Below are positions 2,808 to 54,400 of a DNA stretch of 64,000 bases, piece by piece. A program made the position numbers and the translations under genes. Positions within the stretch are counted from its first letter, which is position 1. Each line of letters begins with the position of its first letter. Where the stretch lies: positions 62,001 to 126,000 of the IMG/VR virus record IMGVR_UViG_3300033153_007973. One strand, 5' to 3'. Under the pieces are notes generated by a model. That model was not told where the DNA came from. It worked only from the letters and a program-made list of their open reading frames with translations, and did not search any database.

Positions 2808-3323
2808 ATGATACCAACAGAGAGTGCCTGGGACCTGTATTACCGCGTATTCAATGACAATGATGATGTCTATGTGATCACTGATAGTGATGAAGCATAC
2901 TGGGGTAAGGCACACGCCACCCAGACAGGACTTCTGCTATCTCATCCTAACGTAGTGGACAGGTTCTTAGATTGGGATGATATTACGTTTATGGCACATG
3001 ATGGATTCCCTGTCCGCAAGCTGATGGGAGCTGATGGATCAAAGGCGATCGAGAAGACGAATACCAATACGATCGAGGCAGGTATCAGGAAGCTCCTGAC
3101 TAAGAACCCAAGCATCACAGATGGTCCGCGGGTGAAGCAGGCAGTATTCGGAGATCCGTTCCTGGTCGAGAATGTCGAAGCTACTCTGATGAATACATAT
3201 TATCCCGGGAACCACATCTGGGAACCAGAACACGAGGAGCTGATCATCCTCAAGGCGCCGGATGGTGCAGTTGGTCTTCTGTATGAACTGAACCGTATAT
3301 ATCATTTTGATGCGCGGGAGTAG
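2808..3323 (+). CDS. hypothetical protein
   Basis: AGGAG SD; 171 aa; stop codon inside tRNA-Gly. Confidence 0.8.
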   Translation: MIPTESAWDLYYRVFNDNDDVYVITDSDEAYWGKAHATQTGLLLSHPNVVDRFLDWDDITFMAHDGFPVRKLMGADGSKAIEKTNTNTIEAGIRKLLTKNPSITDGPRVKQAVFGDPFLVENVEATLMNTYYPGNHIWEPEHEELIILKAPDGAVGLLYELNRIYHFDARE

Positions 3324-3385
3324 CTCAGGGGTAGAGCGCCTGCTTGCCATGCAGGAGGTCGAGGGTTCGAATCCCTTTTCCCGCT
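3314..3385 (+). tRNA. tRNA-Gly(GCC)
   Basis: cloverleaf; CCTGC-TTGCCAT-GCAGG. Confidence 0.95.
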
Positions 3386-3397
3386 CAGGAGGAAAGA

Positions 3398-3484
3398 ATG
3401 AGAAACGAAGAACAGGAAATACTGAAGATCCTTGGAATTCTCATTTTGACAGGAATTCTTCTTGCAATTTTCTTCTCTTTCTGA
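3398..3484 (+). CDS. 28-aa single-TM peptide MRNEEQEILKILGILILTGILLAIFFSF
   Basis: AGGAGG SD; manual translation. Confidence 0.6.
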   Translation: MRNEEQEILKILGILILTGILLAIFFSF

Positions 3485-3499
3485 TAATATAGATTATAT

Positions 3500-3571
3500 G
3501 CGGATAAGGTGTTAATGGCTGCACGGGAGCCTTCCAAGCTTTCGGATCGGGTTCGATTCCCGATATCCGCT
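3500..3571 (+). tRNA. tRNA-Gly(TCC)
   Basis: cloverleaf; loop CTTCCAA. Confidence 0.93.
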
Positions 3572-3578
3572 CATGAAT

Positions 3579-3652
3579 GGCTGCGTAGCGTAGCGGTCTA
3601 ACGCACCGCCCTGTCAAGGCGGGGATCGACGGTTCGAATCCGTTCGTGGCCG
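3579..3652 (+). tRNA. tRNA-Asp(GTC)
   Basis: cloverleaf; loop CTGTCAA; G73. Confidence 0.95.
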
Positions 3653-3654
3653 AT

Positions 3655-3728
3655 GCACCCTTAGCTCAGCTGGCTAGAGCAAGCGGTCGATAACCGCTAG
3701 GTCCCTGGTTCGAGTCCAGGAGGGTGCA
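3655..3728 (+). tRNA. tRNA-Ile(GAT), C33
   Basis: cloverleaf; AGCGG-TCGATAA-CCGCT. Confidence 0.92.
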
Positions 3729-3729
3729 C

Positions 3730-3954
3730 ATGATTGAGATATTAACTATAGTGGCTGCAATCGCTGAGATTGCTGGTATCTATCTTCTGGGTCAGAAAAA
3801 GAAGCTCGGGTTTATTCTGGGTTCAATTTCTGGTGTGCTCTGGGTCGCCTATACTGTGATAACCGGGAATGCGATCGGTCTTGTAATCGTATGTTCCGTA
3901 ACCTTTGTTCTTAATGGACGAGGATTCTTCAAGTGGAGGAAAGAAGAGACATGA
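3730..3954 (+). CDS. PnuC-like three-helix membrane protein
   Basis: three hydrophobic segments; GIYLLGQKKKLGF...LW...GFFKW pattern resembles half of PnuC. Confidence 0.55.
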   Translation: MIEILTIVAAIAEIAGIYLLGQKKKLGFILGSISGVLWVAYTVITGNAIGLVIVCSVTFVLNGRGFFKWRKEET

Positions 3955-4604
3955 ATACATTCATGAAGATTATCAACAAGATATTTAAGAAGAATCCTGG
4001 AAGAAATAAGTGGATGTTGAAAGCTGCTCAGAATGGTGATGTTCTCCTAATTGGTTGCGATAGATTTACTACCAACCTAACATCTAAGCTTCTTCACGAG
4101 GGAATTATCAAGTTTACTGGTGGAAAGTGGTCTCATTCTGGAATCATCAAGATCATAAGAGGTGAGACCAATGTCATAGAAGCAACCAGTGATGGAGTCA
4201 TAACCACTCCATTATGGAGATATATGACATCTAATGGTATATCATATAACATGAAGATTAAGAGAGTCCAAGAAGAACACATCTCACAAGCAAAGAAAGC
4301 GGCATGCAATGCCAAGAAACACAAGGGCAAAAAGTATGATTATGTAGCAGTGATCAATTTGGCCGGTTATATTCTCTATACGAAACAGAAGAGAAAAGGT
4401 CTATCATTGCCGAATGCAGAAGACATCTTCGGCAGAAACACTCCCGATCTCTTTATTTGTTCAGAGCTTGTTCATGCTGCATATAGAGAAGCTGGAATAT
4501 GTCTGTGTGATTTCGTAGAGGATCCAGATGAACAAGAAGCACTGGTAACTCCTCGAGATCTGGACGAATCCAAATATCTACACGATGTGAGAAAACCTAA
4601 ATAA
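3951..4604 (+). CDS. permuted papain-like NlpC/P60 (YiiX/YaeF-type) cysteine hydrolase
   Basis: GDVLL, WSHSGI, IEAT..GV, KKYDY, FICSELV, VTPRDL with His before Cys. Confidence 0.85.
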   Translation: MNTFMKIINKIFKKNPGRNKWMLKAAQNGDVLLIGCDRFTTNLTSKLLHEGIIKFTGGKWSHSGIIKIIRGETNVIEATSDGVITTPLWRYMTSNGISYNMKIKRVQEEHISQAKKAACNAKKHKGKKYDYVAVINLAGYILYTKQKRKGLSLPNAEDIFGRNTPDLFICSELVHAAYREAGICLCDFVEDPDEQEALVTPRDLDESKYLHDVRKPK

Positions 4605-4608
4605 ATCG

Positions 4609-4637
4609 TTGACAAGAAGAAACTTGTGCTTTATAAT
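4609..4637 (+). promoter_or_regulatory. sigma70-type promoter
   Basis: TTGACA-17-TATAAT. Confidence 0.85.
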
Positions 4638-4778
4638 GACACATAGATTAGAGAAAGAAACCAACCAACGCCCGCGGAGGACTATAACATGAAACTATCA
4701 CCTACCTCATTAGAAATTCCCCTTAGTAAGCTAGCCGCGCGGGCATCATTTAGTTATCAGCATATATCTGAACTTCTT

Positions 4779-4850
4779 GGCTCCGTAGTCTAGCGGCTAG
4801 GACACCAGGTTTTCATCCTGGGGGTGGGAGTTCGATTCTCCCCGGAGCTA
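4779..4850 (+). tRNA. tRNA-Glu(TTC)
   Basis: cloverleaf; CCAGG-TTTTCAT-CCTGG. Confidence 0.93.
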
Positions 4851-4854
4851 ATAT

Positions 4855-4926
4855 GTCAGGGGTAACTCAATGGTAGAGTGCACGACTGTGACTCGTGTTA
4901 CGGGGGTTCGATTCCCCTTCCTTGAC
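4855..4926 (+). tRNA. tRNA-His(GTG)
   Basis: cloverleaf with encoded G-1:C73; loop CTGTGAC. Confidence 0.93.
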
Positions 4927-4939
4927 CAAAGGAGATTGA

Positions 4940-5488
4940 ATGGCTAATGTCAGAGATAGCATAGGTAAGATGAGCAAAGTACATTTAATAGATGTCATTG
5001 CTGATGTTGCGATTTATCTCTCATTCCAGCAACATACCCGGAATAAGGATCTGGCGCATGTGGAAAAACTAGAAAAATGCTTGACAACTCTGGAATCATT
5101 GAAGAACTGGAGGACGAAGAAATCTTTGGAAGGGAAGATGAAAACCAAGGAACCTTTAGCATTAACCAATGATATGTTGTTTGATCCAGTAGCTCAAGAG
5201 GAGGTAAATAAGTCTGGCCGTGGTGTGAAGATTAAGAAATCGCCACCAAAGAAACAGGTCAAAAAGAAAACAAAGAGAACAAATGCAACACATACTCATG
5301 AGTTGACACAGGATGAAATAGAAGCACTATTATCAGCTATATCAGATAATCCACCGATAATAGGGTCTGATTCTCTGGAGGAACTCTCGATAAGAGATCG
5401 ACCCCGTCGGCGTCAATCATTTTATAGCCGAACACGGAGCAGACATATACGAATACGAATGGACAGAGAAAGGAAATCACCAGAATAA
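4940..5488 (+). CDS. hypothetical protein with FliM-N-like peptide
   Basis: AAGGAG SD; ELTQDEIEALLSAIS. Confidence 0.75.
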   Translation: MANVRDSIGKMSKVHLIDVIADVAIYLSFQQHTRNKDLAHVEKLEKCLTTLESLKNWRTKKSLEGKMKTKEPLALTNDMLFDPVAQEEVNKSGRGVKIKKSPPKKQVKKKTKRTNATHTHELTQDEIEALLSAISDNPPIIGSDSLEELSIRDRPRRRQSFYSRTRSRHIRIRMDRERKSPE

Positions 5489-5490
5489 TT

Positions 5491-5575
5491 GGAGAGGTGC
5501 GAGAGCGGTTGAATCGGGCTCCCTGCTAAGGAGTTGGGTGTAACAGCCCCGGGGGTTCGAATCCCTCCCTCTCCG
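5491..5575 (+). tRNA. tRNA-Ser(GCT)
   Basis: cloverleaf with long variable arm; G73. Confidence 0.95.
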
Positions 5576-5599
5576 AACTAACTTAAAAAGGAGAAGTAG

Positions 5600-5875
5600 A
5601 TGCCAGACGAAACAAAGATTGTAATACCAAAAAAGGTTCCAAGTAAGAAAGAAGTAGAGGTCATGCAACATGGTGCACAGTGGATCAATGAAGGTAATGA
5701 AATAACATGTCCAGAATGCATGTCGCGTAGTCCAAGGATCAGATGTACTGTAGATAAAGGATTTGATCTCTCTACGGCAAAGGATCCAAATATTGGAAGA
5801 GCAACACATAAGTATATTGCAAAATGTCAATGTACTTTATGTAGTTGCGCATTCGAGATCAGACGCAGCGAGTAG
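5600..5875 (+). CDS. Zn-ribbon hypothetical protein
   Basis: AAGGAG SD; CPEC...CTLC. Confidence 0.75.
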   Translation: MPDETKIVIPKKVPSKKEVEVMQHGAQWINEGNEITCPECMSRSPRIRCTVDKGFDLSTAKDPNIGRATHKYIAKCQCTLCSCAFEIRRSE

Positions 5876-5881
5876 CTAGAC

Positions 5882-5969
5882 GGAGCGGTATCCAAGTCCG
5901 GTTGAAGGAGTCGCACTGTAAATGCGATGCCACGTGCTAAACTCGATGGTTCGAATCCATCCCGCTCCA
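5882..5969 (+). tRNA. tRNA-Tyr(GTA)
   Basis: cloverleaf; TCGCA-CTGTAAA-TGCGA. Confidence 0.92.
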
Positions 5970-5983
5970 ATTGGGTAATGAAT

Positions 5984-6131
5984 CCGGTAATTTTGGTTAC
6001 CGATATTAACGGAAACCGGTAACATGTGTTACCGGAATACCAATACCCGATAAGGTATAATATGTTGGTAGTTATACCCGAAAGGGATGATTTACTGATA
6101 AGATATTAGTAATTATACCCGAACGGGTATA
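5984..6131. repeat. array of six short palindromes
   Basis: 2x CCGGTAA-N6-TTACCG, 3x ATACCCGA..GG(TAT), 1x TTACTGATA-AGA-TATTAGTAA. Confidence 0.8.
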
Positions 6132-6132
6132 T

Positions 6133-6214
6133 GGAGAGGTGGACAACGGTTGTCGAACGGTTTTGAAAACCGTCGCTGGTAAAACAGTTGCAGGTTCGAA
6201 TCCTGTCCTCTCCG
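6133..6214 (+). tRNA. tRNA-Ser(TGA)
   Basis: ACGGT-TTTGAAA-ACCGT; variable arm; G73. Confidence 0.9.
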
Positions 6215-6215
6215 C

Positions 6216-6431
6216 ATGTGTGACAGAGCAGAAGATTGGGACCTAATGATCCGCGCTGAAGCAAAATGCACGGGCGCTAATGTTCACAGGATTCATACCC
6301 TTACATGCTTGCTGGATGGTGCATGGTCGCTCAAACAGGAGAATAGGGAAGATGCTAAAGAATGGCGGAAAGAACTAGTACAATTTGTTTATGGACGCAC
6401 TCGTGCTGGAATGGTAGACAGGTCTGGTTGA
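6216..6431 (+). CDS. possible hypothetical protein
   Basis: fills spacer but has no SD and ends inside tRNA-Leu. Confidence 0.35.
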   Translation: MCDRAEDWDLMIRAEAKCTGANVHRIHTLTCLLDGAWSLKQENREDAKEWRKELVQFVYGRTRAGMVDRSG

Positions 6432-6480
6432 GAACCAGGTGTCAGTAATGGGCGTGTGAGTTCGACTCTCACCGGGTGCA
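6397..6480 (+). tRNA. tRNA-Leu(GAG)
   Basis: cloverleaf with variable arm. Confidence 0.94.
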
Positions 6481-6485
6481 TATGC

Positions 6486-6556
6486 ACACCTATAGCTCAG
6501 GGGCAGAGCAGGAGACCTTTAATCTTTTGACGGTGGTTCGATTCCACCTAGGTGTA
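6486..6556 (+). tRNA. tRNA-Lys(TTT), C33
   Basis: GGAGA-CCTTTAA-TCTTT. Confidence 0.88.
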
Positions 6557-6580
6557 AACCTCTCGAGTTCGAGAGGTTTA
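6555..6580. repeat. perfect 12-bp inverted repeat between the two tRNA-Lys genes
   Basis: TAAACCTCTCGA-GT-TCGAGAGGTTTA. Confidence 0.8.
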
Positions 6581-6583
6581 GAA

Positions 6584-6657
6584 GGACGTGTAACTCAACT
6601 AGGTAGAGTAGCGGGCCCTTAACCCGCAAGTTGTGGGTTCGATTCCCACCGCGTTCA
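6584..6657 (+). tRNA. tRNA-Lys(CTT), C33
   Basis: GCGGG-CCCTTAA-CCCGC. Confidence 0.92.
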
Positions 6658-6658
6658 G

Positions 6659-6760
6659 ATGTTCACGAAGGCTCAACAAAGCCCGACGACACCCGATGCT
6701 AGATCAGGCTGAGGGACGCATGCAGAGGCCGAGTTGTTCAGAGCTGGATCTTTGTGACAT
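6659..6760 (+). ncRNA. putative rod-like structured RNA
   Basis: nested helices TCACGAAG/CTTTGTGA, GCTC/GAGC, AACAA/TTGTT. Confidence 0.45.
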
Positions 6761-6768
6761 GTACAAAA

Positions 6769-6847
6769 GAAGCCGTAGTGTAGAGGCAGCACACCGCCGG
6801 GTAACAACTGTGCGGAGGGGTTATGGTTCAATACCTAGCCGGCTTCC
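6769..6847 (+). tRNA. atypical tRNA with extended anticodon arm (loop GTAACAA)
   Basis: GAAGCCG/CGGCTTC; D arm GTGT/GCAC; bulged T arm GG-TTCAATA-CC. Confidence 0.55.
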
Positions 6848-6852
6848 AAGTG

Positions 6853-6932
6853 ACAGTGTCGGGGCGAGGTCGCGACCACTTCGTGGTCCTCGATAGAAAG
6901 GGTGTGCACACCGCCTTTAGCCCCCGTACTGT
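6853..6932 (+). ncRNA. putative three-way-junction RNA
   Basis: closing ACAGTG-T-CGGGG/CCCCG-TACTGT plus two internal hairpins. Confidence 0.5.
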
Positions 6933-6937
6933 TTTAT

Positions 6938-7010
6938 GGGCTTGTAGCTCTAATGGGAGAGCGCCTCGCTTGCACCGAGGATGTTGCTGGTTCGAATCCA
7001 GTCAGGTCCA
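6938..7010 (+). tRNA. tRNA-Ala(TGC)
   Basis: cloverleaf; G3:U70. Confidence 0.95.
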
Positions 7011-7015
7011 CAATT

Positions 7016-7090
7016 AGCGGGATTGCCTAATTGGCTAAGGCACCAGTCTCTGACACTGGTTTATTGAAGGTTCGAATCCTTCTCCCGCCG
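7016..7090 (+). tRNA. tRNA-Gln(CTG)
   Basis: CCAGT-CTCTGAC-ACTGG; unpaired 1:72; G73. Confidence 0.92.
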
Positions 7091-7106
7091 GAATTATAGG
7101 AGTGAT

Positions 7107-7181
7107 ATGACAGAATTGATGGTAATAGGGTTGATTCTTTTGTGGGGTTTTGGTTTATGGCTCATGGATAAACATTGCTAG
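7107..7181 (+). CDS. 24-aa single-TM peptide MTELMVIGLILLWGFGLWLMDKHC
   Basis: AGGAG SD; manual translation. Confidence 0.55.
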   Translation: MTELMVIGLILLWGFGLWLMDKHC

Positions 7182-7228
7182 TTTGCGTCGAATATTTCCG
7201 TAATCGACGCAGATTTTGCGTCGAATAT

Positions 7229-7302
7229 GCGCTCATAGACCAACGGCAGAGTCAAGGGCCTTAAAAGCCCTCAAGTGATGGGTTCGAATCCCTCTGGGCG
7301 CA
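7229..7302 (+). tRNA. tRNA with TAA (Leu) anticodon and short variable loop
   Basis: AGGGC-CTTAAAA-GCCCT; A73; no long V arm. Confidence 0.85.
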
Positions 7303-7312
7303 AAGGAGAACA

Positions 7313-7384
7313 ATGGAGATTCTAATCATAGTAGTGATAGTCTTAGCAATTTGTGCTATCGATGTGATAGTAAAAAAGAAGTAG
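7313..7384 (+). CDS. 23-aa single-TM peptide MEILIIVVIVLAICAIDVIVKKK
   Basis: AAGGAG SD; stop shares its G with G1 of tRNA-Phe. Confidence 0.55.
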   Translation: MEILIIVVIVLAICAIDVIVKKK

Positions 7385-7455
7385 CCGAGATAGCTCAATG
7401 GGCAGAGCAGGGGATTGAAGATCCTCAAGCGGAGGTCCGAATCCTCCTCTTGGCA
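7384..7455 (+). tRNA. tRNA-Phe(GAA)
   Basis: cloverleaf; T loop TCCGAAT (C55). Confidence 0.9.
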
Positions 7456-7456
7456 A

Positions 7457-7810
7457 ATGAATCGACGAGATAAAATTGTATCGTTCTTACGTAAGCCATA
7501 TCGGAAGGTAAATCCATATGGTCGTATGATGTGTAAGTGTGGTAATTTACAGGTGCACAGTCTTAGGTGGTGCCCTGATTGCGGTGGCGAATACGCCGAT
7601 GATCCATGCAATATGACATTCTGTGATGTTATTATGAGACAGGTAACTGAGAATCCTAGATATCAAAAAGAAGATGGTTATGTTGGATACCTATGGTGGG
7701 AAGCACTACTCAGTAGGTCTATCGGAGTTGGACCAATACCTGCCGCTGAGCTTAAAGATCTGCATGAACAGACATTAAAGGAGGTGCGACATGAAAGATC
7801 TCTAGATTAA
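7457..7810 (+). CDS. Zn-ribbon hypothetical protein
   Basis: first ATG after tRNA-Phe; CKCG...CPDCG. Confidence 0.65.
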   Translation: MNRRDKIVSFLRKPYRKVNPYGRMMCKCGNLQVHSLRWCPDCGGEYADDPCNMTFCDVIMRQVTENPRYQKEDGYVGYLWWEALLSRSIGVGPIPAAELKDLHEQTLKEVRHERSLD

Positions 7811-7825
7811 TCAAGGAGGTTAGAC

Positions 7826-8083
7826 ATGTCACGATCATATAAGAAGAATCCAGGCTACATAGATGGTCCACATGGTGATCATAAACGGTGGGCAAACAAG
7901 GTGGTGCGTAGAACAAAAGATGTCCCAGATGGTTGTCTATATAAGAAACATTATCCACAGTGGGACATCTGCGACTTCAAGTGTATCTACTATAGTAACA
8001 AAGAATGGTTGCGTTACTCCGCTCCAAATAGGACAGAGTTTGGATCAGAATATGACGAACCATATAGAGCAAGAATGAAATAG
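7826..8083 (+). CDS. basic hypothetical protein (MSRSYKK...ANKxVR...WDICD type)
   Basis: AAGGAGG SD; pattern recalled from phage hypothetical proteins. Confidence 0.8.
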   Translation: MSRSYKKNPGYIDGPHGDHKRWANKVVRRTKDVPDGCLYKKHYPQWDICDFKCIYYSNKEWLRYSAPNRTEFGSEYDEPYRARMK

Positions 8084-8088
8084 ATAGA

Positions 8089-8168
8089 GCACTCGTGGTG
8101 GAACTGGCAGACACGCTAGACTTAGAATCTAGTGCGAAAGCATGAGGGTTCGACTCCCTCCGAGTGCA
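8089..8168 (+). tRNA. tRNA-Leu(TAG)
   Basis: cloverleaf with variable arm. Confidence 0.95.
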
Positions 8169-8171
8169 CAG

Positions 8172-8252
8172 GCACTTGTGGCGAAATGGCATACGCGCAC
8201 GGTTCAGAGCCGTGTCCCATTCGGGTTGGTGGTTCGAGTCCACTCAGGTGCA
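8172..8252 (+). tRNA. tRNA-Leu(CAG)
   Basis: cloverleaf with variable arm. Confidence 0.94.
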
Positions 8253-8302
8253 AATATGTATTTTAATTTACGAATACGTTAATTCGAATACATAATTGCC
8301 TT

Positions 8303-8418
8303 GGGCGACATTAATTCAATGGCCAGAGCGAGAGGCACGCGTAGTATGAGGCCTGAGTGAGTTATAGAAATGGGACAGCTTGTCCCTATGTGCGGGTTCG
8401 AATCCCGCATGTCGCCCA
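8303..8418 (+). ncRNA. tRNA-like RNA with two hairpins replacing the anticodon arm
   Basis: GGGCGACAT/ATGTCGCCC; GCGGG-TTCGAAT-CCCGC; D-like TTCAATGGCCAGAG. Confidence 0.65.
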
Positions 8419-8421
8419 CTT

Positions 8422-8494
8422 GCATCCATAGCTCAGTTGGCAGAGCACCTGTTTTACACGCAGGGTGTCGGAGGTTCGATTCCTTCTGGATGCA
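8422..8494 (+). tRNA. tRNA-Val(TAC)
   Basis: cloverleaf; loop TTTACAC. Confidence 0.95.
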
Positions 8495-8499
8495 CAGAT

Positions 8500-8583
8500 G
8501 TGCTGGTTTCCCTCCCGGCGCCCAATATTGTGTTTATGGACTGGGGAGAGTCGTTATGGAGCTCTCCCCTTAGTCCTGCAAAT
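8500..8583 (+). repeat. two-hairpin element, copy 1
   Basis: GTGCTGG/CCGGCGC then GGACTGGGGAGAG/CTCTCCCC..AGTCC-TGCA. Confidence 0.7.
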
Positions 8584-8656
8584 GGTCTTGTAGCTCAATC
8601 GGTAGAGCACCATACTCATAATGTGAGGGTTGGTGGTTCGAGTCCACCCAAGACCA
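8584..8656 (+). tRNA. tRNA-CAT (elongator Met or lysidine Ile2)
   Basis: cloverleaf; loop CTCATAA. Confidence 0.92.
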
Positions 8657-8681
8657 ATAGCTAGCCGATTCCAAGGACGCC

Positions 8682-16305: not shown

Positions 16306-16334
16306 TTGACATTCTCCGCACTAGATGATATAAT
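16306..16334 (+). promoter_or_regulatory. sigma70-type promoter, extended -10
   Basis: TTGACA-17-TATAAT with TGn. Confidence 0.85.
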
Positions 16335-22719: not shown

Positions 22720-22748
22720 TTGACAGCTAATTAGATAGATGATATAAT
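22720..22748 (+). promoter_or_regulatory. sigma70-type promoter, extended -10
   Basis: TTGACA-17-TATAAT with TGn. Confidence 0.85.
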
Positions 22749-36976: not shown

Positions 36977-37890
36977 TGAAGAATATATCAGAATATTATG
37001 AGGGACAGCAGCAGTATTATACTGGTGCAAATGTTTCTATCTTCATTGATAATATATATCTAGATGAAGTAACTATGATCAGTTGGAGAGGGGTTAGAGG
37101 TGATACTCCTCTCTATTCATATAATGAAGAACACTTTAACTCCCTTGCAAAAGGCGTATACCGAGTAGAAGGCAAGTTCTCTATCAATTATGTAACTACT
37201 GGATATCTGGAATATATTATAGCTAAAGCAGCAAATCATCCTGCCAATCCACACGGTGAAGCGGCTGAGGATGTTACTGGTGCGGTTCCAGTTGGTCGAT
37301 TTGACTATCAGGTTGAGAAGTTTAAGAGGTCTGAGAATAGAATCAGAGAAGGAGATATTATTAATGACAAGTATGTCTTTGATAAATTCAAAGCGGGCGT
37401 ACAAGTCGGCACTATAGAAGAAGTTAGGAATTCACTTAGAAACTATCTCTGGGGAAACAAAACTGAAAAGATTAAGAGTCTTGGTAAGAATGTTGGTAGT
37501 GTATTATCGGATCACTATTTCAATATTCTAGTAATCTATGGAAATCCTAATAGTGATTCATACACAATGCATAACATTATTAATGCTAAGATTATTGATG
37601 TTAGCCAACAGTCTGCAGCGGATGGAACTCCTATACAGGAAGTATATACATTTCTAGCACAAGACATGGACAGACCACTATTCACAGACCATGCTATTGA
37701 GCATCCATTAGCTGGTGGATATGCCGAGAAACCAAAGATCTCTCCACAAGCAATGCTCGGATATCTGAAAGTGTTAGTAGAGAAGTTTGCGGACCAGAAT
37801 ATCCTTGCTCCAATATTGGATGGTTCTACTAGAAGTAACTTCTTAAAAGTAACTCATAAACAAATGTTTGATACTGGGGATCTAACATAG
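36976..37890 (+). CDS. tube-fold paralog (baseplate hub)
   Basis: YYTGANVSIFID..PLYSY..KG..RVEGKFSINY..YTFLAQD. Confidence 0.65.
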   Translation: MKNISEYYEGQQQYYTGANVSIFIDNIYLDEVTMISWRGVRGDTPLYSYNEEHFNSLAKGVYRVEGKFSINYVTTGYLEYIIAKAANHPANPHGEAAEDVTGAVPVGRFDYQVEKFKRSENRIREGDIINDKYVFDKFKAGVQVGTIEEVRNSLRNYLWGNKTEKIKSLGKNVGSVLSDHYFNILVIYGNPNSDSYTMHNIINAKIIDVSQQSAADGTPIQEVYTFLAQDMDRPLFTDHAIEHPLAGGYAEKPKISPQAMLGYLKVLVEKFADQNILAPILDGSTRSNFLKVTHKQMFDTGDLT

Positions 37891-40800
37891 TGGCTGAGAA
37901 AACACAACCACCAGCATTTCAGGTAATGAAGAGTGGACTGAGAGTAGTATCTCCACGATATATAACTGGGGACCTGCAGTTTCTCATGGTTAATTATATT
38001 ATTGGTCAATATAACTTCATCACATTTAGTCTGAACTATCCAGAATATTATAAGTCCCTTAATACAATGGTACAGTCACTATTTGATGAAGTTGCTGCTG
38101 ATGGGTATCGTCTTGTTGAAGGACAAACGACCGAACAAGGCAAACTATTGCCATCTATATATGAAGTTCCAATCCAATGGAACAATATAAAGAATTATGG
38201 ATATCTCACAAGTGCTGTCCGAACAGCACTAGATGCTGTTGCGGATACACCAACAGATGATACATTTGGCAACAACAGTATTATTAATCTTGGTGACACT
38301 CTTCTTGATGAGTCTGCTGAAGGAATTACAGCAAAACTAGATGGTCCTGTTAATACATGGATGTTTCAGAGTCCAAATCATCCTTCGGAGAGAGTGGATT
38401 TCCGTACTGTAAATGAGGCACGGAGAACCACATTTGGATTAACAGAAGATCAAATCAAGTATACTGATATCTTCAATCCTAACGTTCCAGAACAAAGATA
38501 TCCTGAATTTCAGGATGGAAATCTTAAAGCAACTATTGAACTTGAGTCTCATAATGGGATGGAATTCACACTTGATACTGATAACTACATGAAAGAAACG
38601 GAGAACAGTGTTTTATCTACAGTATATCCTGATCTTCGCGGATACGGACGTGGTTCATTTGATGTAACCGCAGATGAACTCCCATTAAATGTTGAGTCTC
38701 AGTTTAATACACTCGAATACACCACAGCGTATAGTATATTTAAAACAGGAGTATATTATCGAGTAATGAGATATACGATTGATGTATCATGGAAGGAAAA
38801 GGAAGCAGATGCCAAGGATGGAATACACGGAGGAGCAATAAAACAACTTTATGATATCCTTCTTGGTACCTCAGATTATGAAGGCGCAATAATAACAACG
38901 AAAATAAGAGATGATCTAGATCGAGCAAAGTCACCGATCATACCAGTCAGTGCAACGATTACAGGACTAACTACCGATGGTAAGTCACTAAGCATACATC
39001 CTTCAAATATGTTTATAACATATACCGAAAGCACTGCGACAGAAATACACATTGGCGCAGATACCAAAGACTTTCAGGTTCAGCTTCTTGTTGTTGTAGA
39101 AGAACAACAAGACATGGGAATGGCCACCAACTCAATTCTAAGAGTAAGACTAACACCATTGGAACAAACAAGAGATCTTTTAAGATATTGTGACCTATAT
39201 GGATCTCAGCTCGTAAATTCTTCATTCTGGGATATTAATGGTACAACTATCAACGCACGAAATACCGAATGGAAAGCCATATTAGAGAAGATCATTGATA
39301 CAAAACCCACTCTTGGAAGAATACTAGTTAAGGATAAGGTTAATCCAACTCAAAGAATATTCGCCATTACGGGATGTTCTTCTAGTCGTGCTGATGATCT
39401 CATAGAGTTTAAAGGAGAAACCATCGGTGATGAAACAGATACACTATCTCCATTAGATGCAAAATCACCATCTCCAGAAACTATGGAAGATAAGATCAGA
39501 AAGGTTGTTGGTAGAATCCAGGGAGATGTAGATACTCTATGGAAACTAGAACTTGATAGTGTTGCTAAACTAGTAACTGATTACATTATCGATCCAACAT
39601 TGGAAGAAGATGGTCGCAATCCTAAAGGCATGGGAACGCTGAATGTTGTCATAGATAGCGAACATGCAATCATTGCTGAAGTTCAGAAATGGCTCGCATG
39701 CAAATCAGCTCTCGATTCTTTAACATTAAGTGGTGATATATCTCATGAAGTTAAGCAATTATTTTATCCGAATATTACAATAATCAATAAACAGAGAGAA
39801 GATACTAATAAGATAGCATATACCACGGATGAGTATAACACAATAGTTGATGCATTGCAAATCACTAAAGCTATGCTCAAGACTAAGATGGATGACATTA
39901 TTGTACTCATAAAGGGAATACAAAATACTCTAGATATCACAATGGGCGGCGGTGGGCAGCTTGTTCAGACACTAAAAACAATTGAAGCTTTTCCAAAGAC
40001 AGAAACCGCGAAAAGTCAGTTAAAATCTCTAGATCTTTCAGATAGTGTGATCTCTGATCTTTCTAAGCGTCTCAATGAAATGAAAATTAGAATTGATGAT
40101 GAGGTCCTCAAACCCGCTAGAAAATTTAGTCTCGCTGTAACAGAGTTTACATTCTCTACTAGTGCATTATCTGGTCCAAACCCAGAAGCAACATACCAAG
40201 AGAAATATGATATGTTGATACAGCTGCTAGAGCCATTCCCTGTTAAACACATTGATAACTGGATTTATAATGATTATCTCAATATGGGAGATGATAGCAA
40301 AATGAAGGGAGATGTTCAGGGTATAAAACATGATCTTCTCTATGCTATTATTAAAAAAGAAACACTCAATGATAGTGATCTGACTGCCAGTGTCTATAGA
40401 AAGCTGCGGCAGACACTAGCTGGAGACACAGCAGTCGAAGATAGTAAGTTCGTTATTACAGATAAGTGGCTAACAGACGGCACTGCCGGAGATATCATCG
40501 CACTCAGTGATGATTATCCTCTATGTAGACAATGTATGCGATTAGATGAATCTAGTTTCGAAACTGCTGAACCAGTTGTTGATCGCGGTTGGTTTATGGA
40601 TATGGGAATCATTGCGAATACTGACTCCATAAGCAATAATGCAATGAATCCAATACATAGAAATCAGATCTTTGGTATTATAAGAGCATGGAAGGCATCA
40701 GATAGTAATCCCAATGTAGCTATTCCAGGTGCTGATGCTGAGTCTCTAGCGCGAAACCTTCATACACATACTAAGACAGGAATAACACTTCGATCAGATG

Positions 40801-42365
40801 AGAGCGCAGTATTTCCAATGCTTCCTCTATCTAGTATGCTCTTTGGTGAAAGACAGAAATGGATAGATGCAAATAACCAGGCTGAAACTAAAATATATCC
40901 ACTTGTTCCAGACACACTTGTTCCAGATAGAGCTGGATTTGATAAGTGGCTAAATAGACTATATGGACAAGAAGTCAAAACTGCATGGCACAGAATTTCA
41001 TCCAGTGAAGAAGCAACTCTATCTGCGTTGGATGATAAAGAAGTCGTTTTTATAAATCCATCCAGGGAAGTGAAATACATACTTGAAGGTGGATCTGAGA
41101 ATACAATTTCTATAGCATCTCGTCAATTTCTATGTCTTATACGAATCCCTGATCATCGCCCGGAGGGATCCGCTCCAGTTCTCCGATTCCTAGTATTTCC
41201 ATTAGAGAATAAGATTGCGGAATCTGATATTGATGATCTAGAGAAATTACGATTTAGTCCGACGCTCGATTACTTTGATCCAAAGTATGGAGATCGAAAT
41301 GAGTTAGTGAATAAGATCACATTTAGTACATTCAGTCTTACATCTACACATGAAAGTCAGATGGTGTTTCGGCCCCATTATAATCGGATTGAGAATGCTC
41401 AGTGTACATATGCATTGGAGGAACTCAGTGATGCTGAAACACAATTACCACAACAAGAACCAGAGAAACAAACAGCAGAACTGATCATAACAGACTACTG
41501 GATACTCTCATATACTGCTCTGCGGGCAATCAGTGATAAGTTTATGCCACCATATAAATTTGTATCACAACCTCTTATTGATTTTAGCGATGAGTCATAT
41601 ATTTCAGTGAATGTCATTGCACCTTCTCCATTATGGAGAGATACATTCATACCCGTAACCAGGAAAGAATCAACTACAGATATTGCTGATCAATCAATAA
41701 CTCAGAATCTTGCTACTATGTCAAATCTGGCACAGACATCCACAGGTGCACCACAGGCAACATGGGATGGAACCCTTTTCTCGTTTGATGAGATAGATGA
41801 TCCTGATTCAAGTGAAACAAATATAACTTCTCCATCTCACATGTATACTGTTGTCACAAAGGACGAAAAGGGATTTAGTTTCCTACAGACTCTTGTGAAT
41901 AACAATCCATTAATCATTCCAAAGAAAGTTTCTGGTGATCCATATGTGCCACCTGCGGTAGGATCAATTGATGCATGGAACGGTAATACCACCAAGTTCG
42001 AAATAGAGATGAAATCTAGTGACACCTCCAAGTATGATCCTGGAGGAGACATCATGTTATTTGTTGATAGTAAATATGCATCATATCTAGACAATCTGCC
42101 ATCTATTATCTCCAATGGAAAATGTACTATCAGAATGGACTTTAATCATATGGTAGTACAGATAGATACCCAGCATGATACGTTGACAATGCTCCAAACT
42201 ACTCGTATAATACTAGCAAAGCTATTACTTGGAATAATGAAAGATAAGCTTGATAGCATTATTGATGAAGGACACACAGGATTAACACTTTCCTACTTTG
42301 TTACTGATGCTCCAGATACAGAGCAACAGTGGATCGATATAACCGTTCAGATGGAACGTATATAA
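37890..42365 (+). CDS. large acidic putative virion protein
   Basis: 1491-aa ORF in tail module; no motif recognised. Confidence 0.7.
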   Translation: MAEKTQPPAFQVMKSGLRVVSPRYITGDLQFLMVNYIIGQYNFITFSLNYPEYYKSLNTMVQSLFDEVAADGYRLVEGQTTEQGKLLPSIYEVPIQWNNIKNYGYLTSAVRTALDAVADTPTDDTFGNNSIINLGDTLLDESAEGITAKLDGPVNTWMFQSPNHPSERVDFRTVNEARRTTFGLTEDQIKYTDIFNPNVPEQRYPEFQDGNLKATIELESHNGMEFTLDTDNYMKETENSVLSTVYPDLRGYGRGSFDVTADELPLNVESQFNTLEYTTAYSIFKTGVYYRVMRYTIDVSWKEKEADAKDGIHGGAIKQLYDILLGTSDYEGAIITTKIRDDLDRAKSPIIPVSATITGLTTDGKSLSIHPSNMFITYTESTATEIHIGADTKDFQVQLLVVVEEQQDMGMATNSILRVRLTPLEQTRDLLRYCDLYGSQLVNSSFWDINGTTINARNTEWKAILEKIIDTKPTLGRILVKDKVNPTQRIFAITGCSSSRADDLIEFKGETIGDETDTLSPLDAKSPSPETMEDKIRKVVGRIQGDVDTLWKLELDSVAKLVTDYIIDPTLEEDGRNPKGMGTLNVVIDSEHAIIAEVQKWLACKSALDSLTLSGDISHEVKQLFYPNITIINKQREDTNKIAYTTDEYNTIVDALQITKAMLKTKMDDIIVLIKGIQNTLDITMGGGGQLVQTLKTIEAFPKTETAKSQLKSLDLSDSVISDLSKRLNEMKIRIDDEVLKPARKFSLAVTEFTFSTSALSGPNPEATYQEKYDMLIQLLEPFPVKHIDNWIYNDYLNMGDDSKMKGDVQGIKHDLLYAIIKKETLNDSDLTASVYRKLRQTLAGDTAVEDSKFVITDKWLTDGTAGDIIALSDDYPLCRQCMRLDESSFETAEPVVDRGWFMDMGIIANTDSISNNAMNPIHRNQIFGIIRAWKASDSNPNVAIPGADAESLARNLHTHTKTGITLRSDESAVFPMLPLSSMLFGERQKWIDANNQAETKIYPLVPDTLVPDRAGFDKWLNRLYGQEVKTAWHRISSSEEATLSALDDKEVVFINPSREVKYILEGGSENTISIASRQFLCLIRIPDHRPEGSAPVLRFLVFPLENKIAESDIDDLEKLRFSPTLDYFDPKYGDRNELVNKITFSTFSLTSTHESQMVFRPHYNRIENAQCTYALEELSDAETQLPQQEPEKQTAELIITDYWILSYTALRAISDKFMPPYKFVSQPLIDFSDESYISVNVIAPSPLWRDTFIPVTRKESTTDIADQSITQNLATMSNLAQTSTGAPQATWDGTLFSFDEIDDPDSSETNITSPSHMYTVVTKDEKGFSFLQTLVNNNPLIIPKKVSGDPYVPPAVGSIDAWNGNTTKFEIEMKSSDTSKYDPGGDIMLFVDSKYASYLDNLPSIISNGKCTIRMDFNHMVVQIDTQHDTLTMLQTTRIILAKLLLGIMKDKLDSIIDEGHTGLTLSYFVTDAPDTEQQWIDITVQMERI
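42183..42211 (+). promoter_or_regulatory. intragenic sigma70-type promoter
   Basis: TTGACA-17-TATAAT about 170 nt upstream of the chaperone gene. Confidence 0.7.
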
Positions 42366-42828: not shown

Positions 42829-43749
42829 ATGATAGACAAACAGAAACTAGACAAGTGGAGACGCAGATACGGCATAATCTCCGCATTGTCCACTAAGAAC
42901 GGGGATGAATATGTCCTCCGCGGTCTTCAGTTTGAGGAGATGCATAGATGGTCTTCCTTTATTACCGTATCTAAAGGTACTTCAGATACGTATGATATTG
43001 ATGATCAGATTATCGAAGATGTCCTTTCTGCATGTATCCTTCATCCTGAAGAACCAAACATATCTCTAATCATGGAAAAAGCAGGGCTTGTTGTCGAAAT
43101 GTGTAACCGCATTATGAGTGTAACACAATTCGAGAACATGGACTTTCTGATTAATTGTTATATAGATAAACTTAGATCAGCCAATATGGTATATGGAGTC
43201 ATCCGTATGCGATTGGTTGCTCTCTACGGAGTAGCAGTTCTAGAAAAGCTCAGAGATCTAAAGGCAGAAGAAATTATCGAGCTTTTAGTATATGGTGAAT
43301 ACTCCACAGAGAGTATCGGACAGTTCTCTGAGATTATTAACAAGCCAGAGATCCTTCCTAGAGATAGAAAGGGCAAGATCATAGAGAAAGAGATGATGAA
43401 TCTTCTCTTTGGAAAGGACAAACCAAACACTCCTGCACAGAACAAAAGGGAGAAGACACCACATAAACCAAAGACAATCGATGATCTTCAATCGATGATG
43501 GATAAATCACAACAAGCAAATAGAGGACCATCTGAAGAAGAGCTTCAAACAATGGATAGTAAGACACATGCACAGATGAAGAAAGACGGAAAGATACCAG
43601 ATTTCCAACAAGAAGTTAAGGGATCAATGAATGATGCAACATCAGCACTTCAGAAGAAGATTGAAGAAGATAAAGCCAAGTTTGGCACAGGTGCTGCGGA
43701 CAGAACGGGTGGATTTAGAGGAAACATACAGGATCTAATTAATAAATAA
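42829..43749 (+). CDS. putative tail assembly chaperone paralog with C-terminal extension
   Basis: N-terminal ~105 aa resemble the preceding ORF. Confidence 0.6.
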   Translation: MIDKQKLDKWRRRYGIISALSTKNGDEYVLRGLQFEEMHRWSSFITVSKGTSDTYDIDDQIIEDVLSACILHPEEPNISLIMEKAGLVVEMCNRIMSVTQFENMDFLINCYIDKLRSANMVYGVIRMRLVALYGVAVLEKLRDLKAEEIIELLVYGEYSTESIGQFSEIINKPEILPRDRKGKIIEKEMMNLLFGKDKPNTPAQNKREKTPHKPKTIDDLQSMMDKSQQANRGPSEEELQTMDSKTHAQMKKDGKIPDFQQEVKGSMNDATSALQKKIEEDKAKFGTGAADRTGGFRGNIQDLINK

Positions 43750-46700
43750 TGCTTACTCGAACAAGAGACCGAGAAAACCGTGAGCGACTTGGAGAATTTT
43801 CCAAAAAGTCGCGCGGTAGTCCTATTCGCTCTATCCTAAAGATGGGCGCGACCATGCTGGGCTGGGGCATTGGTCTTAAGGTATTCAGAGGAATGTCATT
43901 CAAGGCTAATCTTGGCCTTGGAAAGATATTAGCCAGCACTGTCCGTAAGGGTTCACTGACAAATGCATTCGTCTCTAAAGTTTCTGAGGTAGCAAAAGCT
44001 GGAATAAGAGCTGGTAAGTACACGCCTGGTCAAATATCAACAATGAAGAAAGGCCGCGGCTGGTATAGGAAACTCCAGACAACAGTAAAGACTTCTCTAG
44101 ATACAATGGCTACTCGACATCTCTCTCTGCATGATGCAATAAAGACAGAGGGACTCGCTAAAAGACAGTACTTTGTTAAGAGTAGTCTCGAGAAGACGAC
44201 TAATAGACTTGGAGGAATGCATCAAAGATATGCACAAGCAAAGATCAATGCGAATATTCCAGAACTATTAGATGATCTAAGTCTAAAAGATATTCGCTTT
44301 ACTTCCATTGTTAGAAATACAAAGAAGTTCAGTGGTTCTGGTCTTGGAAGAAAGATAAATGAGATGAGATCCACAAAACTGCTAGAGCCTGGCGGAGATC
44401 TCTATGCTCGAGCAAGGAAGAACAGTGGTGCCACATTGGGAGGACCGAACTTTGGGAAGGCAATGGCGGCACGCATGTATAGATATGGCACAGACTTTAT
44501 GTCATATGCTCCGCTATTCTATGCTTCACATAGATTGACTGCAGTTGATGATAAGAAATGGTACCAGCCTTCTGCAATAGCGGACTGGACTAAATGGGCA
44601 GTCGGTACAGATATTGTATTCCGCGGTGCTATGCCTGCTGCATCAATTGGTCTTCGTAAGCTGGGAAGAGGAGCAGCAAATATTCTTGAGAATACAATCA
44701 GCCCCACAATGGCTCAGAAAGGTGCCAAGTTCCTTGAGTCGATATCAAAGAGCGCACCAATTAGAGCAGCAGATCTTGCTAGAGACTATACTAAAGCAGA
44801 AATTGGCAAGGTAGGCGTTAAAGATGTTCCTAGATATACAAAGACATTCTTCCAACAGTATAGACGATTCCGCGGAATGATTACTAAAGATCCTAACCTT
44901 CATCTGCGGAAGGGCACTGATCATCTAGAGGAAGCAATGTCAATGCTTTCCAAAATAAATACCAGAATCAAAGGATCGATGCCAAAACACGAGGCACTTG
45001 CTCAATTCAAGAAGGAAACTATAGAACCACCAAGCAGGGCAATGTCATTCTTTAATAAGATGATAAGAGGAGGAGGACTGTCAAGTGCATCACGCACAAT
45101 AAAACCAACCGATGTTGGTAATGCATTCAACAAACAAGTTACTGTTAATGCAGGTAGAGGAATGATTTCCTTACAGGGACAAGAGTTTGATGTCTCTAAT
45201 ATACTGCCAAAAAGACTCATGCAAGAAGCAGGGAGGATGCTTGGGAAAGTCAGTATAGCTGGAGTTCGTCCTGGCACATGGTTTGGACTAAAGGGCGCAT
45301 TCAGAAAGAGGCGTCCTTTCGCACAGTTACTGGAAAAGGATCAGCACCTTGGAATTGGGATAGGCGATCATGACGGATTTAGTGGGAGTGCAATTTTACA
45401 GAAGTTTGGTGAACAAGGTGATCGATTAGAACTAGAAAACCAAATAAAATATGCATCCGTGGGAGGAAAGGGGCAAGTCGCAACACTAATTGATAAAGGT
45501 GACAAGACATCAGAAGGATGGGCAAAAACAAATACAAAGAAACTCTATCAGTCCATGATTGCTGCACGAAAGGAAGAATTAACTCCGACCGGTATGGAAA
45601 AGTATAAAGCAGCTCTCGCTAGAGGACATAATATTCAGAGAGAAGGTGAGTCGTTCTTTCTTATGGGAGACAAATCATATTACTCAGTTTCCTCTGGAGT
45701 CGGCACCAAAAAAGCACCGGTAGTATTCCAAACGGGTTATGATGTAAATGCAGGACAATTTCATAGATGGGATCTATATGCTAAAGGACAGGGAGGAACA
45801 TTATCAGATGTCGCAATGGACCATTTTGGTCGAGCTGGTACTGTAGAAGTCGATGGTAAACCCATATATGGATCATCTGGTCCTAGATTACATAGTAGAA
45901 TGCATCCCGACAAGAGTCCAATTGCGAACATGGCAGCTAAGTTCTTGGATAAATTTGAAGTTGGGTCAAAAGAAGAACGAGCAGTATTAGGTAAGATTAC
46001 TGATCTTGGGTTAGGAAGATACATAGACTCAGCCAATACCAAAGTCTTTCTCAGTGATGAATTCCTCTTTCATCCTGAATTCGCAAAGACAACCCTGGCA
46101 CAAGATGATGGTTCAGCTGCAAAACTTATCAGAAGACTAGATGCTCAATCACACCGAATGGAAAAGGTCCAAGCTCAACGTGTTCTCAAGGGTGAACGAT
46201 TAATTACAGCAATTCGTGGAGATATGCAAGGTAATGCAGCCGGTAAGAAAATAGAAAGTACAATAATAAATAGACTAACAGATGATTTCTCTGTTGTAAA
46301 ACAGAAAGCAAAAGCAAGAATGACATTCAATAAAGCAAACAAAATTCAATTAAGACCAGAAATGGAAGAGATCATAGAAGAGATCGCAAGCGGGAATGCT
46401 ACGAGCTTTAGGAAACTACAATCTTCAGTTCATCCTAAATTACGAATGAATAAGCTTGATGCATATAATAACTCTGCATACCGAACATGGTTTAAGTCAG
46501 AAGATTTTGGTGTCCTAGATAGAGAAATGGCAAGTCTCATGGACAGAGGGATTATAACTAGAAACGATAAAGCATTCAGAGCATTAGAGGCAACACGAAT
46601 AATAAGTGAATTCGATAATTTTGATGTACATAATGAACTAATAAATGCAGAATTGGGCAAGTTAGGTGACTATAATCATAACACAATCAATAGAGTCATC

Positions 46701-51461: not shown

Positions 51462-54400
51462 TAGAATACATGCTGGCGATCATGATAATGATAGTATATT
51501 TAGTCCGATCGCTCCTCTTCTAGCAATTGGTGCTGTCAGTGCGATTGGTATGTCTGTAGCTATGATTAATCGCAATAGCATGCTTCGCTCAAAGTATTCT
51601 AGAATAGCCGCGGGGATGGATAGATATCCAACACAAGCCCTACCAAGAGTGGATAACAGTAGTGCATTCAGTGTTCTTCGTAGCGAAGCGGCCATGAATG
51701 AACTGAAAGCCATGAAGAAGCAGCGCTTAATTGATGTAGCTAGAATGGCTATTCAAAAAGAAGAAGAGGTGATCGCTAACGAGGTTAGTGATGCTCTCGG
51801 CGATCTAATGAATATCCGCTACAATCTATCTAATATAGAACTTAGAAGGGCATGGGGATCAGGCCATCCATTCGAACTAGCAGGCACTATCGCCGACACA
51901 CTCGATGAAGCCATATTAGGAATTAGTACAGGAAAACCAGATTCAATTCGAGATGCAATAACTCGCTTAAAAACAGATATAGCAACAATACAAACGCGGC
52001 CGAATACATCAGTTGAGATCAGGGCAGGAGATCTACAACAAGTTCTTGAAAGACTTCAGGGAGCTGAGAAACTATACACTGAAGATCTTCCAAAATTAGT
52101 AAACGCAGTGCAACCATTCGCTCCTGGTGCAGTTACCGCAGAAACAGCAGCAACTATCTTGGGCGGCTCACCAGCTACTTTAGCGAAAAGACTAAATGAA
52201 GAACAAATTCCCGGTGGAAAGAAAGGAAGAGTTAATCGGGAACGAATGGAACAAATAAAGATACTGACTGGATTCAAGACAGAGAAGATCAATAATAGAT
52301 TAGTTACCACACATGGACGAGTAAACTGGGTGCGAAAACTAAGGGGAATCAGTCCAACAACTGGGGCAATCATGCCCGCTGGTTCCACAATTAAAGTCAT
52401 ATATCCTCAAATTGGAGTTACTGGTAATATCGAAGATCTTGATAGAGTAGTTCAGGCTGCTGGAAAAGAATTCAGGACTCATCCATTACTGAAAGAAGCA
52501 CACAAGACACATCTCAGAATGGCTAAAAATGCAAAGGGAAATGTTAAGTTACTATTATCATCTCCAGATATGAAAACGTCACTTAAGAGATTTACAGATG
52601 GAGTAGTGGAACATCTTGGAGTAAACCCTAGAGATATTACTTTTACTCAAGAAGGAGCCAATGTTGTTTCCCTTGTTAAGTTCACTGACGCACCACCGAT
52701 GCGATTTGTCTTCCCATATGAAGAAGCAGGTCTATCAGCATCATATGGACATAATGTAATCTCAGCTTCCAAGAAATCTTTCACACATATGGGCAAAGGT
52801 GAAAAGAAGATACTGTCATCCAGCATCACTAATGGTTTTATTGATAGAATGGTTGGAAAAGGCACCGGTTCCAATGGTGTGTTCCAGAAGATGGCTACTG
52901 CAGGTGATATAAAGAATGGAGCATTCAAGGACGCAACATCAAGAGTTCTTTTCCAACGAAAAGTTAAAGGAATATTCTCTGGTGGTGGTAAAATGATGAC
53001 AGACGTAACAAATGCTTCCCCAGAGGCAATATCAAATGCAGTAACAACTTTTGAAGAGCTTCCAGGAACAGACAAAATTAGTGTATTACAAATAATGAAA
53101 CATGAAGAGGAAACTAAACTCAGTACTATTATATCTAATCCAACTGGTAATAGATTTGTAGGTCAGAAAACTGCGGTCCTCGATAAGATAAATAGTCTTC
53201 AACGACAAATCAATAAACTCCAAAAAGGATATAGTGCAGACAAAGCACTTACCGATCTTGAGCGAACCCACACTGGAAAACTCAAAGTTGCAGAAGTGAT
53301 TAACTATAATAATAATAATATCATTATTAGTGAATTAAGTAAAGACGGATTTATACCTACAACTTCTGTCGTAACGCCAGAACGAGCACTAAAGAATAAA
53401 GCGTGGGGATTGGAAGACATTAGAGAAAGATACAGTGATCCTGGATTGCAATGGATCAAAGGATCTAAATCTATAAATAATATGTATGTTTCTTCTGATG
53501 TATCAATATTTAGTCCCAGTAGCAGTGATTGGGGCAGAAGAATATCAAATTTAAAGAAGAGATCAAAACACAGACTAAAATTAACCATCGGTAAGAAAGA
53601 GGTTAATTTTAGTGGTGTTAGAATGATTAGTAGAGCAGAACAGGTTAAACGAGCAGCACTTGCAGGAGATTATAGCACAGCTCGTGGATCATATGGACAA
53701 GTTAATGTATTATTTGTTGACTCCATAGGAGGAGATGCTGGAGAACTCAGAATCACAGATGAAGTCGGTGACATGTTAGCTGGCTCAAGAGATAGAAAGG
53801 TTTCACTTAATTCTGCAGACATTAGACGGCCATTTAGTGGCATTGATCAGCAAATGACTAAAGCATTAAAGAAAGTATCTAAAGAGAATGGATTAATTGA
53901 TCTAACTGCTCCAGAGAATTGGCACGTTAGAAAGAAGCTTAATGTATTTCTTCCAAAGATAAAAGATCAAATCAAAACTCCTTACGAGGATATAAAGCTA
54001 ACTGCAATAACACATAAAGCAACGGGCAGTTATGAATTTCATTATACTGCGAATATGACAGCTGCGACGAAATCAAAGATTCTGCTTGGTGCGAACAATG
54101 AAAGATTACAAGTACATTCTACATTATCCAAAGATAGAATGTTTGAAATGCTTGCTGCTGAAATGGACTGGGATTTATCAGATGCTAATAGCTCTAAGAC
54201 TCAGTTCCTCAGAGACATAGGAGCAACAGTGGGTGCAAAAGCACCACTCAGTCTCTTCAAGAAGGGAATTGCAACACCAGGAGCAGCAGCCGGATTAGGA
54301 ATGAGCATAACAAATGCGCTAGTTTTTAGAACACTCTATAGAGTTCAAAAGATTCTGGCAGATCGTGGTCTTAGAACCATGGATGATAAACAAGCAACAA

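Follow-up and report, generated by a model that had tools for sequence, protein, structure and literature searches.

The N-terminal peptides of the bacterial flagellar switch proteins FliM and FliY, which carry the sequence LSQxEIDALL (the "EIDAL" motif), are the docking sites for the phosphorylated chemotaxis signal protein CheY (CheY-P) (PMC6700473, PMC7595845, PMC6946799). FliM_N is intrinsically disordered and folds on CheY-P (PMC6700473), both FliM_N and FliY_N are bound by CheY-P in Bacillus subtilis (PMC7595845), and the Asp of EIDAL pairs with CheY Lys119 in Escherichia coli (10.1101/762922). The motif lies at the extreme N terminus, 5 to 8 residues from the start, and is followed by a flexible acidic linker. 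The same motif has a second partner, the MinD-like ATPase FlhG: EIDAL is reported to be necessary and sufficient for FlhG interaction in Shewanella, and FlhG is reported to act through FliY in B. subtilis (10.1101/2022.04.21.489128; PMC12327844). Other peptides that use the same face of CheY, the CheZ C-terminal peptide and the CheA P2 domain, are host chemotaxis components with no sequence similarity to EIDAL. Phage proteins that manipulate host motility include type IV pilus inhibitors such as PfsE (PMC8764522) and the RNA-guided flagellin repressors TldR (PMC13418256), but mimicry of host short linear motifs, a hallmark of eukaryotic viruses, is barely documented in phages, and no phage factor is known to act on the CheY-FliM signalling step.

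A first-pass annotation of a 64,000-nucleotide stretch of DNA (the window; positions 62,001 to 126,000 of IMG/VR record IMGVR_UViG_3300033153_007973) reported a FliM-like peptide in a Lys/Arg-rich, disordered phage protein and proposed that it is a decoy that titrates CheY-P and alters host motility or chemotaxis. The observation was confirmed. Window positions 5300 to 5344 (+) encode ELTQDEIEALLSAIS, residues 121 to 135 of a 182-aa protein, here called P0001, whose open reading frame (ORF) lies at 4940 to 5488 (+). The Bacillus FliM sequence given in that annotation was also correct, as Bacillus altitudinis FliM starts with MSGEVLSQNEIDALLSAISTGE and was confirmed as FliM by Pfam. The interpretation, on the other hand, is supported only in part: the peptide is of the FliM/FliY type by sequence and is displayed in a predicted accessible region of a real-looking gene, whereas CheY-P binding is an inference, and a flagellated host, which the annotation also suggested, is consistent with the data but not demonstrated.

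The window is part of a complete 234,008-bp myovirus genome with direct terminal repeats and 42% GC. Downstream of the ORF lie the large terminase (TerL), portal, major capsid, and tail sheath genes, which are distantly related (25 to 32% identity) to those of Moorella phage MTATph1, the Bacillus jumbo phages 0305phi8-36, KLEB27-3, WH1, and Edson, and Acinetobacter phage ME3. Hosts of the Bacillus and Moorella kind have this FliM motif type, but ME3 infects nonflagellated Acinetobacter. The major capsid protein gave no relative in IMG/VR, and the nearest TerL relative (67%) lies on a 5-kb contig, too short for a syntenic comparison; several distant TerL relatives also carry intein domains. In the window, an intein-like insertion (Hint plus a LAGLIDADG homing endonuclease) sits at residues ∼1519 to 1877 of a 2570-aa product (43749 to 51461, +) that has no other Pfam domains. 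Giant ORFs of 1491 aa (37890 to 42365, +), 2274 aa (51448 to 58272, +), and more than 1839 aa (58484 to 64000, +) lie downstream of the tail genes, and the first two, those scanned, have no Pfam match. They may be tail fiber or baseplate proteins, as in the curly-fibred 0305phi8-36 group. One "marine metagenome" DNA run holds 6% of the sequence words of the region, and no paper was found for the sample identifiers. No receiver domain, FliM/FliN, or flagellin was found in the genome (no PF02154 or PF01052 match), which rejects the idea that the peptide binds a phage-encoded CheY-like protein; any partner must therefore be a host protein.

The ORF is wedged between tRNA genes. ARAGORN predicted an array of 20 tRNA genes at 3314 to 8657, all on the + strand, interspersed with small ORFs that include a Peptidase_C92 (YiiX-like) protein at 3933 to 4604 and orphan ORFs at 2808 to 3323, 5600 to 5875, 7415 to 7810, and 7826 to 8083. 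tRNA-Glu (4778 to 4851) and tRNA-His (4856 to 4927) lie immediately upstream, a Shine-Dalgarno AGGAG (4930 to 4934) lies 5 nt before the ATG, and tRNA-Ser(GCT) (5490 to 5576) starts 2 nt after the stop codon. A perfect sigma-70/sigma-A-type consensus promoter, TTGACA-17-TATAAT (12 of 12 hexamer positions), is found at 4609 to 4637 on the same strand, upstream of tRNA-Glu, tRNA-His, and the ORF, although that it drives the ORF is inferred from position only. The window has four such sites, all on the + strand (also at 16306 to 16334, 22720 to 22748, and 42183 to 42211), compared to 0.10 expected from shuffles. Some lie inside the structural module, just upstream of the portal gene, which suggests that the host primary sigma factor is used throughout the genome.

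That the ORF is a spurious open frame in a tRNA spacer appears very unlikely. No RNA run was listed, no homologue was found, and its codon-usage score, trained on the long genes of the phage, is lower than theirs (0.13 against 0.295 ± 0.06). However, only the annotated frame has a positive score (+0.13, against −0.34 to −0.90 in the other five frames), other small ORFs in the array score similarly, and a 549-nt open frame with a strong Shine-Dalgarno site exactly fills the gap between tRNA-His and tRNA-Ser. An identical copy of the protein is encoded on a 4.1-kb contig from a second sample, which has two single-nucleotide differences, both outside the ORF.

The protein is very basic (pI 10.0), with a net charge of +7 in residues 101 to 120 and +6 in residues 161 to 180, compared to −5 in residues 121 to 140. 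A single-sequence AF2 model, which is poor overall (pLDDT 60) and thus weak evidence, predicted a long N-terminal helix at residues 13 to 64 (4976 to 5131; pLDDT 65 to 76), a disordered Lys-rich segment at residues 91 to 114 (5210 to 5281; KSGRGVKIKKSPPKKQVKKKTKRT), and an Arg-rich tail at residues 152 to 180 (5393 to 5479) that is mostly low confidence or disordered. An isolated helix at residues 124 to 136 is the most confident block of the model (pLDDT 84), whereas residues 65 to 123 and 137 to 165 are nonhelical with low confidence. This arrangement fits the description of FliM_N as a disordered segment that folds on its partner. A single complex prediction of B. subtilis CheY with P0001 residues 110 to 148, run without controls, gave a score of 0.16, below the mark, and is used neither for nor against binding.

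To compare the peptide with natural examples, one genome per species (185,579 species) was scanned for [ST]QxEI[DE]ALLSAI, which returned at least 119 loci. In every listed locus the match lies a few residues after a start codon, and where the locus holds the whole gene, it heads a frame of about 320 to 340 further residues; two examples were confirmed as FliM by Pfam (PF02154 plus PF01052). The organisms are Bacillales, Leptospira, Brachyspira, and other Spirochaetota, plus a few Clostridia and Negativicutes. In the same loci, the gene just downstream of fliM begins with LSQ[DE]EI[DEN]ALL[RKN]G and is FliY, with a CheC-like domain. The phage peptide satisfies the LSQxEIDALL consensus with L-T-Q-D-E-I-E-A-L-L, and its two deviations are both natural variants: T for S occurs in 1 of 115 FliM and 2 of 89 FliY, and E for D, which keeps an acidic residue at the position that pairs with CheY Lys119 in E. 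coli, occurs in 25 of 89 FliY, as in LSQDEIEALL of Brachyspira and LSQEEIEALL of Lysinibacillus, Ureibacillus, and Sporosarcina. With a position matrix built from natural FliY peptides the phage 10-mer scores 31.5 bits (natural range, 29.5 to 34.7), and with a FliM-plus-FliY matrix the 14-mer scores 38.4 bits (natural range, 29.7 to 47.6), whereas the next best site in all six frames of the phage genome scores 10 to 15 bits. The peptide therefore reads as a FliY-like core with a FliM-like tail, the ALLSAIS extension being found here only in FliM of Bacillales, Spirochaetota, and a few other Bacillota.

Such a mosaic could be a neutral relic, a fragment of a host fliM or fliY 5′ end captured by illegitimate recombination into an orphan phage ORF, but this is improbable. 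The nucleotide identity to 119 fliM 5′ ends reached at most 79% (33 of 42), which is not diagnostic, since shared AT-rich codons would give the same. Furthermore, the similarity ends exactly at the motif borders, the conserved FliM continuation TGE is absent, and no exact donor was found, as the pattern TQxEIEALLSAI had no hit in the 185,579 species genomes.

Is the match more than chance? Some trends were apparent. First, the regular expression [LIVM][ST]Q.E[IVL][DE].L[LIVM] matched only once in all six frames of the genome, at this site. Second, the 13-residue pattern L[ST]QxEI[DE]ALL[ST]AI had no other match in 2.9 million IMG/VR contigs. Third, the motif boundaries coincide with the CheY-binding segment. 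However, the 10-residue core alone is not specific: it occurs in 56 IMG/VR loci, many of them inside unrelated large proteins or at recombinase-like N termini, although none of these continues with [ST]AI. A metagenome-wide scan for QxEIEALL[ST]AI gave three hits, one of which is a XerD-like tyrosine recombinase (426 to 1370, −, of metagenome contig Ga0102940_1016216) with VLSQEEIEALLSAID at the start of its catalytic domain, a chance look-alike of the extended motif and a useful negative control for motif-based screens. The peptide combines generic helix features, namely a hydrophobic staple, an S/T-x-x-E capping box, and an amphipathic I..LL.AI, and it can arise by chance in families rich in capping-box amphipathic helices, although P0001 is not such a protein. 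A chance or generically favored capping-box helix, in a basic protein that binds nucleic acid or the virion, possibly an RNA or DNA chaperone encoded in the tRNA array, and has nothing to do with CheY, is not excluded, given that a XerD-like recombinase carries LSQEEIEALLSAI. This reading is tentative but only slightly less likely than the decoy. It is favored by the pI, the Lys- and Arg-rich disordered tails, and the location of the gene, and disfavored by the score of the 14-residue match, more than 15 bits above any other site in the genome, and by the absence of a recombinase domain. We estimate that a chance origin is unlikely for this genome but not negligible, as the first-pass annotation may have covered many windows.

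Conservation of the motif in homologues, which had been named beforehand as a test of the proposal, could not be applied to P0001, because no usable homologue was found by Pfam and PHROG profile searches, tblastn against GenBank phages, a word-indexed search of 5.8 billion proteins, exhaustive phmmer against 1.84 billion representatives, or searches of IMG/VR and the ESM Atlas. The phmmer search returned only a weak low-complexity hit to residues 37 to 89. Hence, there is no evolutionary evidence that the motif is under selection in this protein. The five nearest cultured phages lack any Q.EI[DE].LL in any frame. A PDB sequence search with the peptide gave only an irrelevant weak hit in a library without FliM peptides shorter than 20 residues.

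The scans did, however, provide independent support for the idea that phages carry such peptides. Five further unrelated small ORFs on viral contigs of 12 to 153 kb have an EIDAL-type peptide 3 to 8 residues from their start, where FliM and FliY carry it: L131 (4738 to 5283, −; MENVMPEILTQEEIEALLEVIEDE), L154 (4454 to 4918, +), which equals L161 (7987 to 8451, −; MRDILSQDEIDALLNG), L159 (5725 to 6231, −; MASILSQSEIDALLDAVDEPE), L130 (327 to 713, +; MGLTQEEIDALLTKK), and L178 (6725 to 7114, −; MSDGSLSQDEIDALLAG), the names being those of the contig loci. The four scanned against Pfam (L130, L131, L154, and L159) have no domain, neighbors of L154 and L159 match phage families, and no homologues were found for the L131 and L159 proteins. 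The L131, L154, and L159 proteins are acidic (pI 4.7 to 4.8), and that of L130 is near neutral (pI 6.6).

A further example is a family of 121- to 128-aa proteins beginning with MAQILSQEEIDALL or MAMILSQEEIDALL, which was found in IMG/VR (loci L175 to L177, L180, and L182 to L184) and in 44 GenBank records (including hits H41 to H80). All are Campylobacter phages (Fletchervirus, Firehammervirus, and DA10): NCTC12673, PC14, CP81, CPX, and the F-series; CPt10, CP20, CP220, and IBB_35; and DA10. All are annotated as hypothetical. Examples are CP220 YP_009169205.1 (L189, 292 to 657), DA10 QGK89688.1 (L186, 292 to 675), and QDYZ WGA02281.1 (L187, 292 to 666). Their extreme N terminus is M-A-x-I-L-S-Q-E-E-I-D-A-L-L, and in an alignment at 33 to 40% overall identity, L5, S6, Q7, E9, I10, D11, and L14 are invariant while the next ∼15 residues vary freely, making the motif the most conserved block. 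This is the conservation signature that P0001 itself cannot provide. In some records, F352 (L191), 1PH123 (L185), and PT14_12670_16 (L190), the reading frame shifts within about 20 nt after the EIDAL-coding segment (e.g., CCCC versus CCC), which separates the peptide from the body of the protein. These look like assembly differences in short homopolymers rather than long phase-variable tracts, although real on/off variation was not excluded. No paper linking phages with FliM, CheY, or EIDAL mimicry was found in the searchable literature.

The most likely explanation, at a probability of about 0.4, is that P0001 is a genuine small phage protein, probably transcribed with the tRNA array from a host-type promoter, that acts as a CheY-P decoy. 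In this view, the peptide would dock on the alpha4-beta5-alpha5 face of CheY-P, which normally binds the N termini of FliM and FliY, compete with the motor and with the FliY phosphatase, and uncouple flagellar rotation bias from chemoreceptor signalling, locking the cell in its default rotation state; in a Bacillus-type host, where CheY-P promotes counterclockwise rotation, this predicts a tumble bias. The long N-terminal helix may oligomerize the protein and raise avidity, and the basic flanks may add electrostatic attraction to acidic CheY. What the analysis establishes is the peptide itself, its fit to natural FliM/FliY variation, its accessibility in a model, and the gene-like features of the ORF, whereas binding, competition, the phenotype, and the benefit to the phage, possibly exclusion of flagellotropic superinfecting phages or keeping the infected cell in place, are inferred. 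Alternatively, though this is unlikely, the mimic may target FlhG and disturb flagellar number and placement or C-ring assembly. The core QDEIEALL is identical to FliY-type cores, but the SAIS extension is of the FliM type, the FliM N terminus is the CheY-P site in Bacillus, and FlhG binding to isolated FliM was reportedly weak or undetected in Vibrio (10.1101/2022.04.21.489128).

A broader possibility, itself doubtful on present evidence, is that grafting the EIDAL peptide onto unrelated small proteins is a recurrent, convergent phage strategy for intercepting CheY-P (or FlhG), of which P0001, the Campylobacter phage family, and at least the five orphan ORFs would be instances. This would define a new class of phage-encoded short-linear-motif mimics that rewire chemotaxis or flagellar assembly during infection. 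If these peptides bind CheY-P, phages would be shown to reprogram the swimming of infected cells at the level of the motor switch, with consequences for superinfection by flagellotropic phages, dispersal of infected cells, and phage ecology. The peptides would also be compact, genetically encoded tools for titrating CheY-P. The hypothesis is specific, unexpected for phage biology, and immediately testable, and the Campylobacter phages offer a cultured, tractable system for it.

Compared to the described systems, P0001 is a previously unreported carrier of a known docking motif. Relative to FliM_N of Bacillales and Spirochaetota, such as that of B. altitudinis, 12 of 14 residues are identical over L-x-Q-x-E-I-x-A-L-L-S-A-I-S with two conservative changes, and both are short helix-forming segments in a disordered context. 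However, the phage motif is internal (residues 122 to 135 of 182), not N-terminal as in every natural example and every other phage example, the hydrophobic V/I that precedes L in FliM is replaced by E, and the flanks are basic, whereas natural linkers, like the phage proteins of L131, L154, and L159, are acidic. Relative to FliY_N, the core is identical to natural cores (LSQDEIEALL in 10 of 89 and LSQEEIEALL in 14 of 89, in Planococcaceae-type Bacillales and Brachyspira), but FliY continues with [RKN]G, not SAIS. P0001 lacks the FliM middle domain (PF02154), the CheC-like domain (PF04509), and the SpoA/FliMN_C domain (PF01052) and is therefore not a C-ring protein. The first helix of the tyrosine recombinase catalytic domain (L[ST]xxE[IV]xxLLxA...) has the same capping-box and amphipathic pattern, and a recombinase-like phage ORF has VLTQDEIDALLYHC, yet P0001 has no Phage_integrase match and no similarity beyond the helix, which is followed by a Pro/Ser/Arg-rich tail. 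With PfsE and TldR it would share the general logic of a phage factor altering a motility organelle that also serves as a phage receptor, but these act by PilC/PilB binding and transcriptional repression, and neither is a mimic of a switch-protein peptide. Finally, the Campylobacter phage proteins likewise carry an EIDAL peptide on a small nonflagellar scaffold, but theirs is at the extreme N terminus and is followed by a conserved helical domain of about 100 residues. P0001 is not a member of this family, as hhalign of the family alignment against it aligned only the 15-residue motif (probability, 16%), so the resemblance is convergent.
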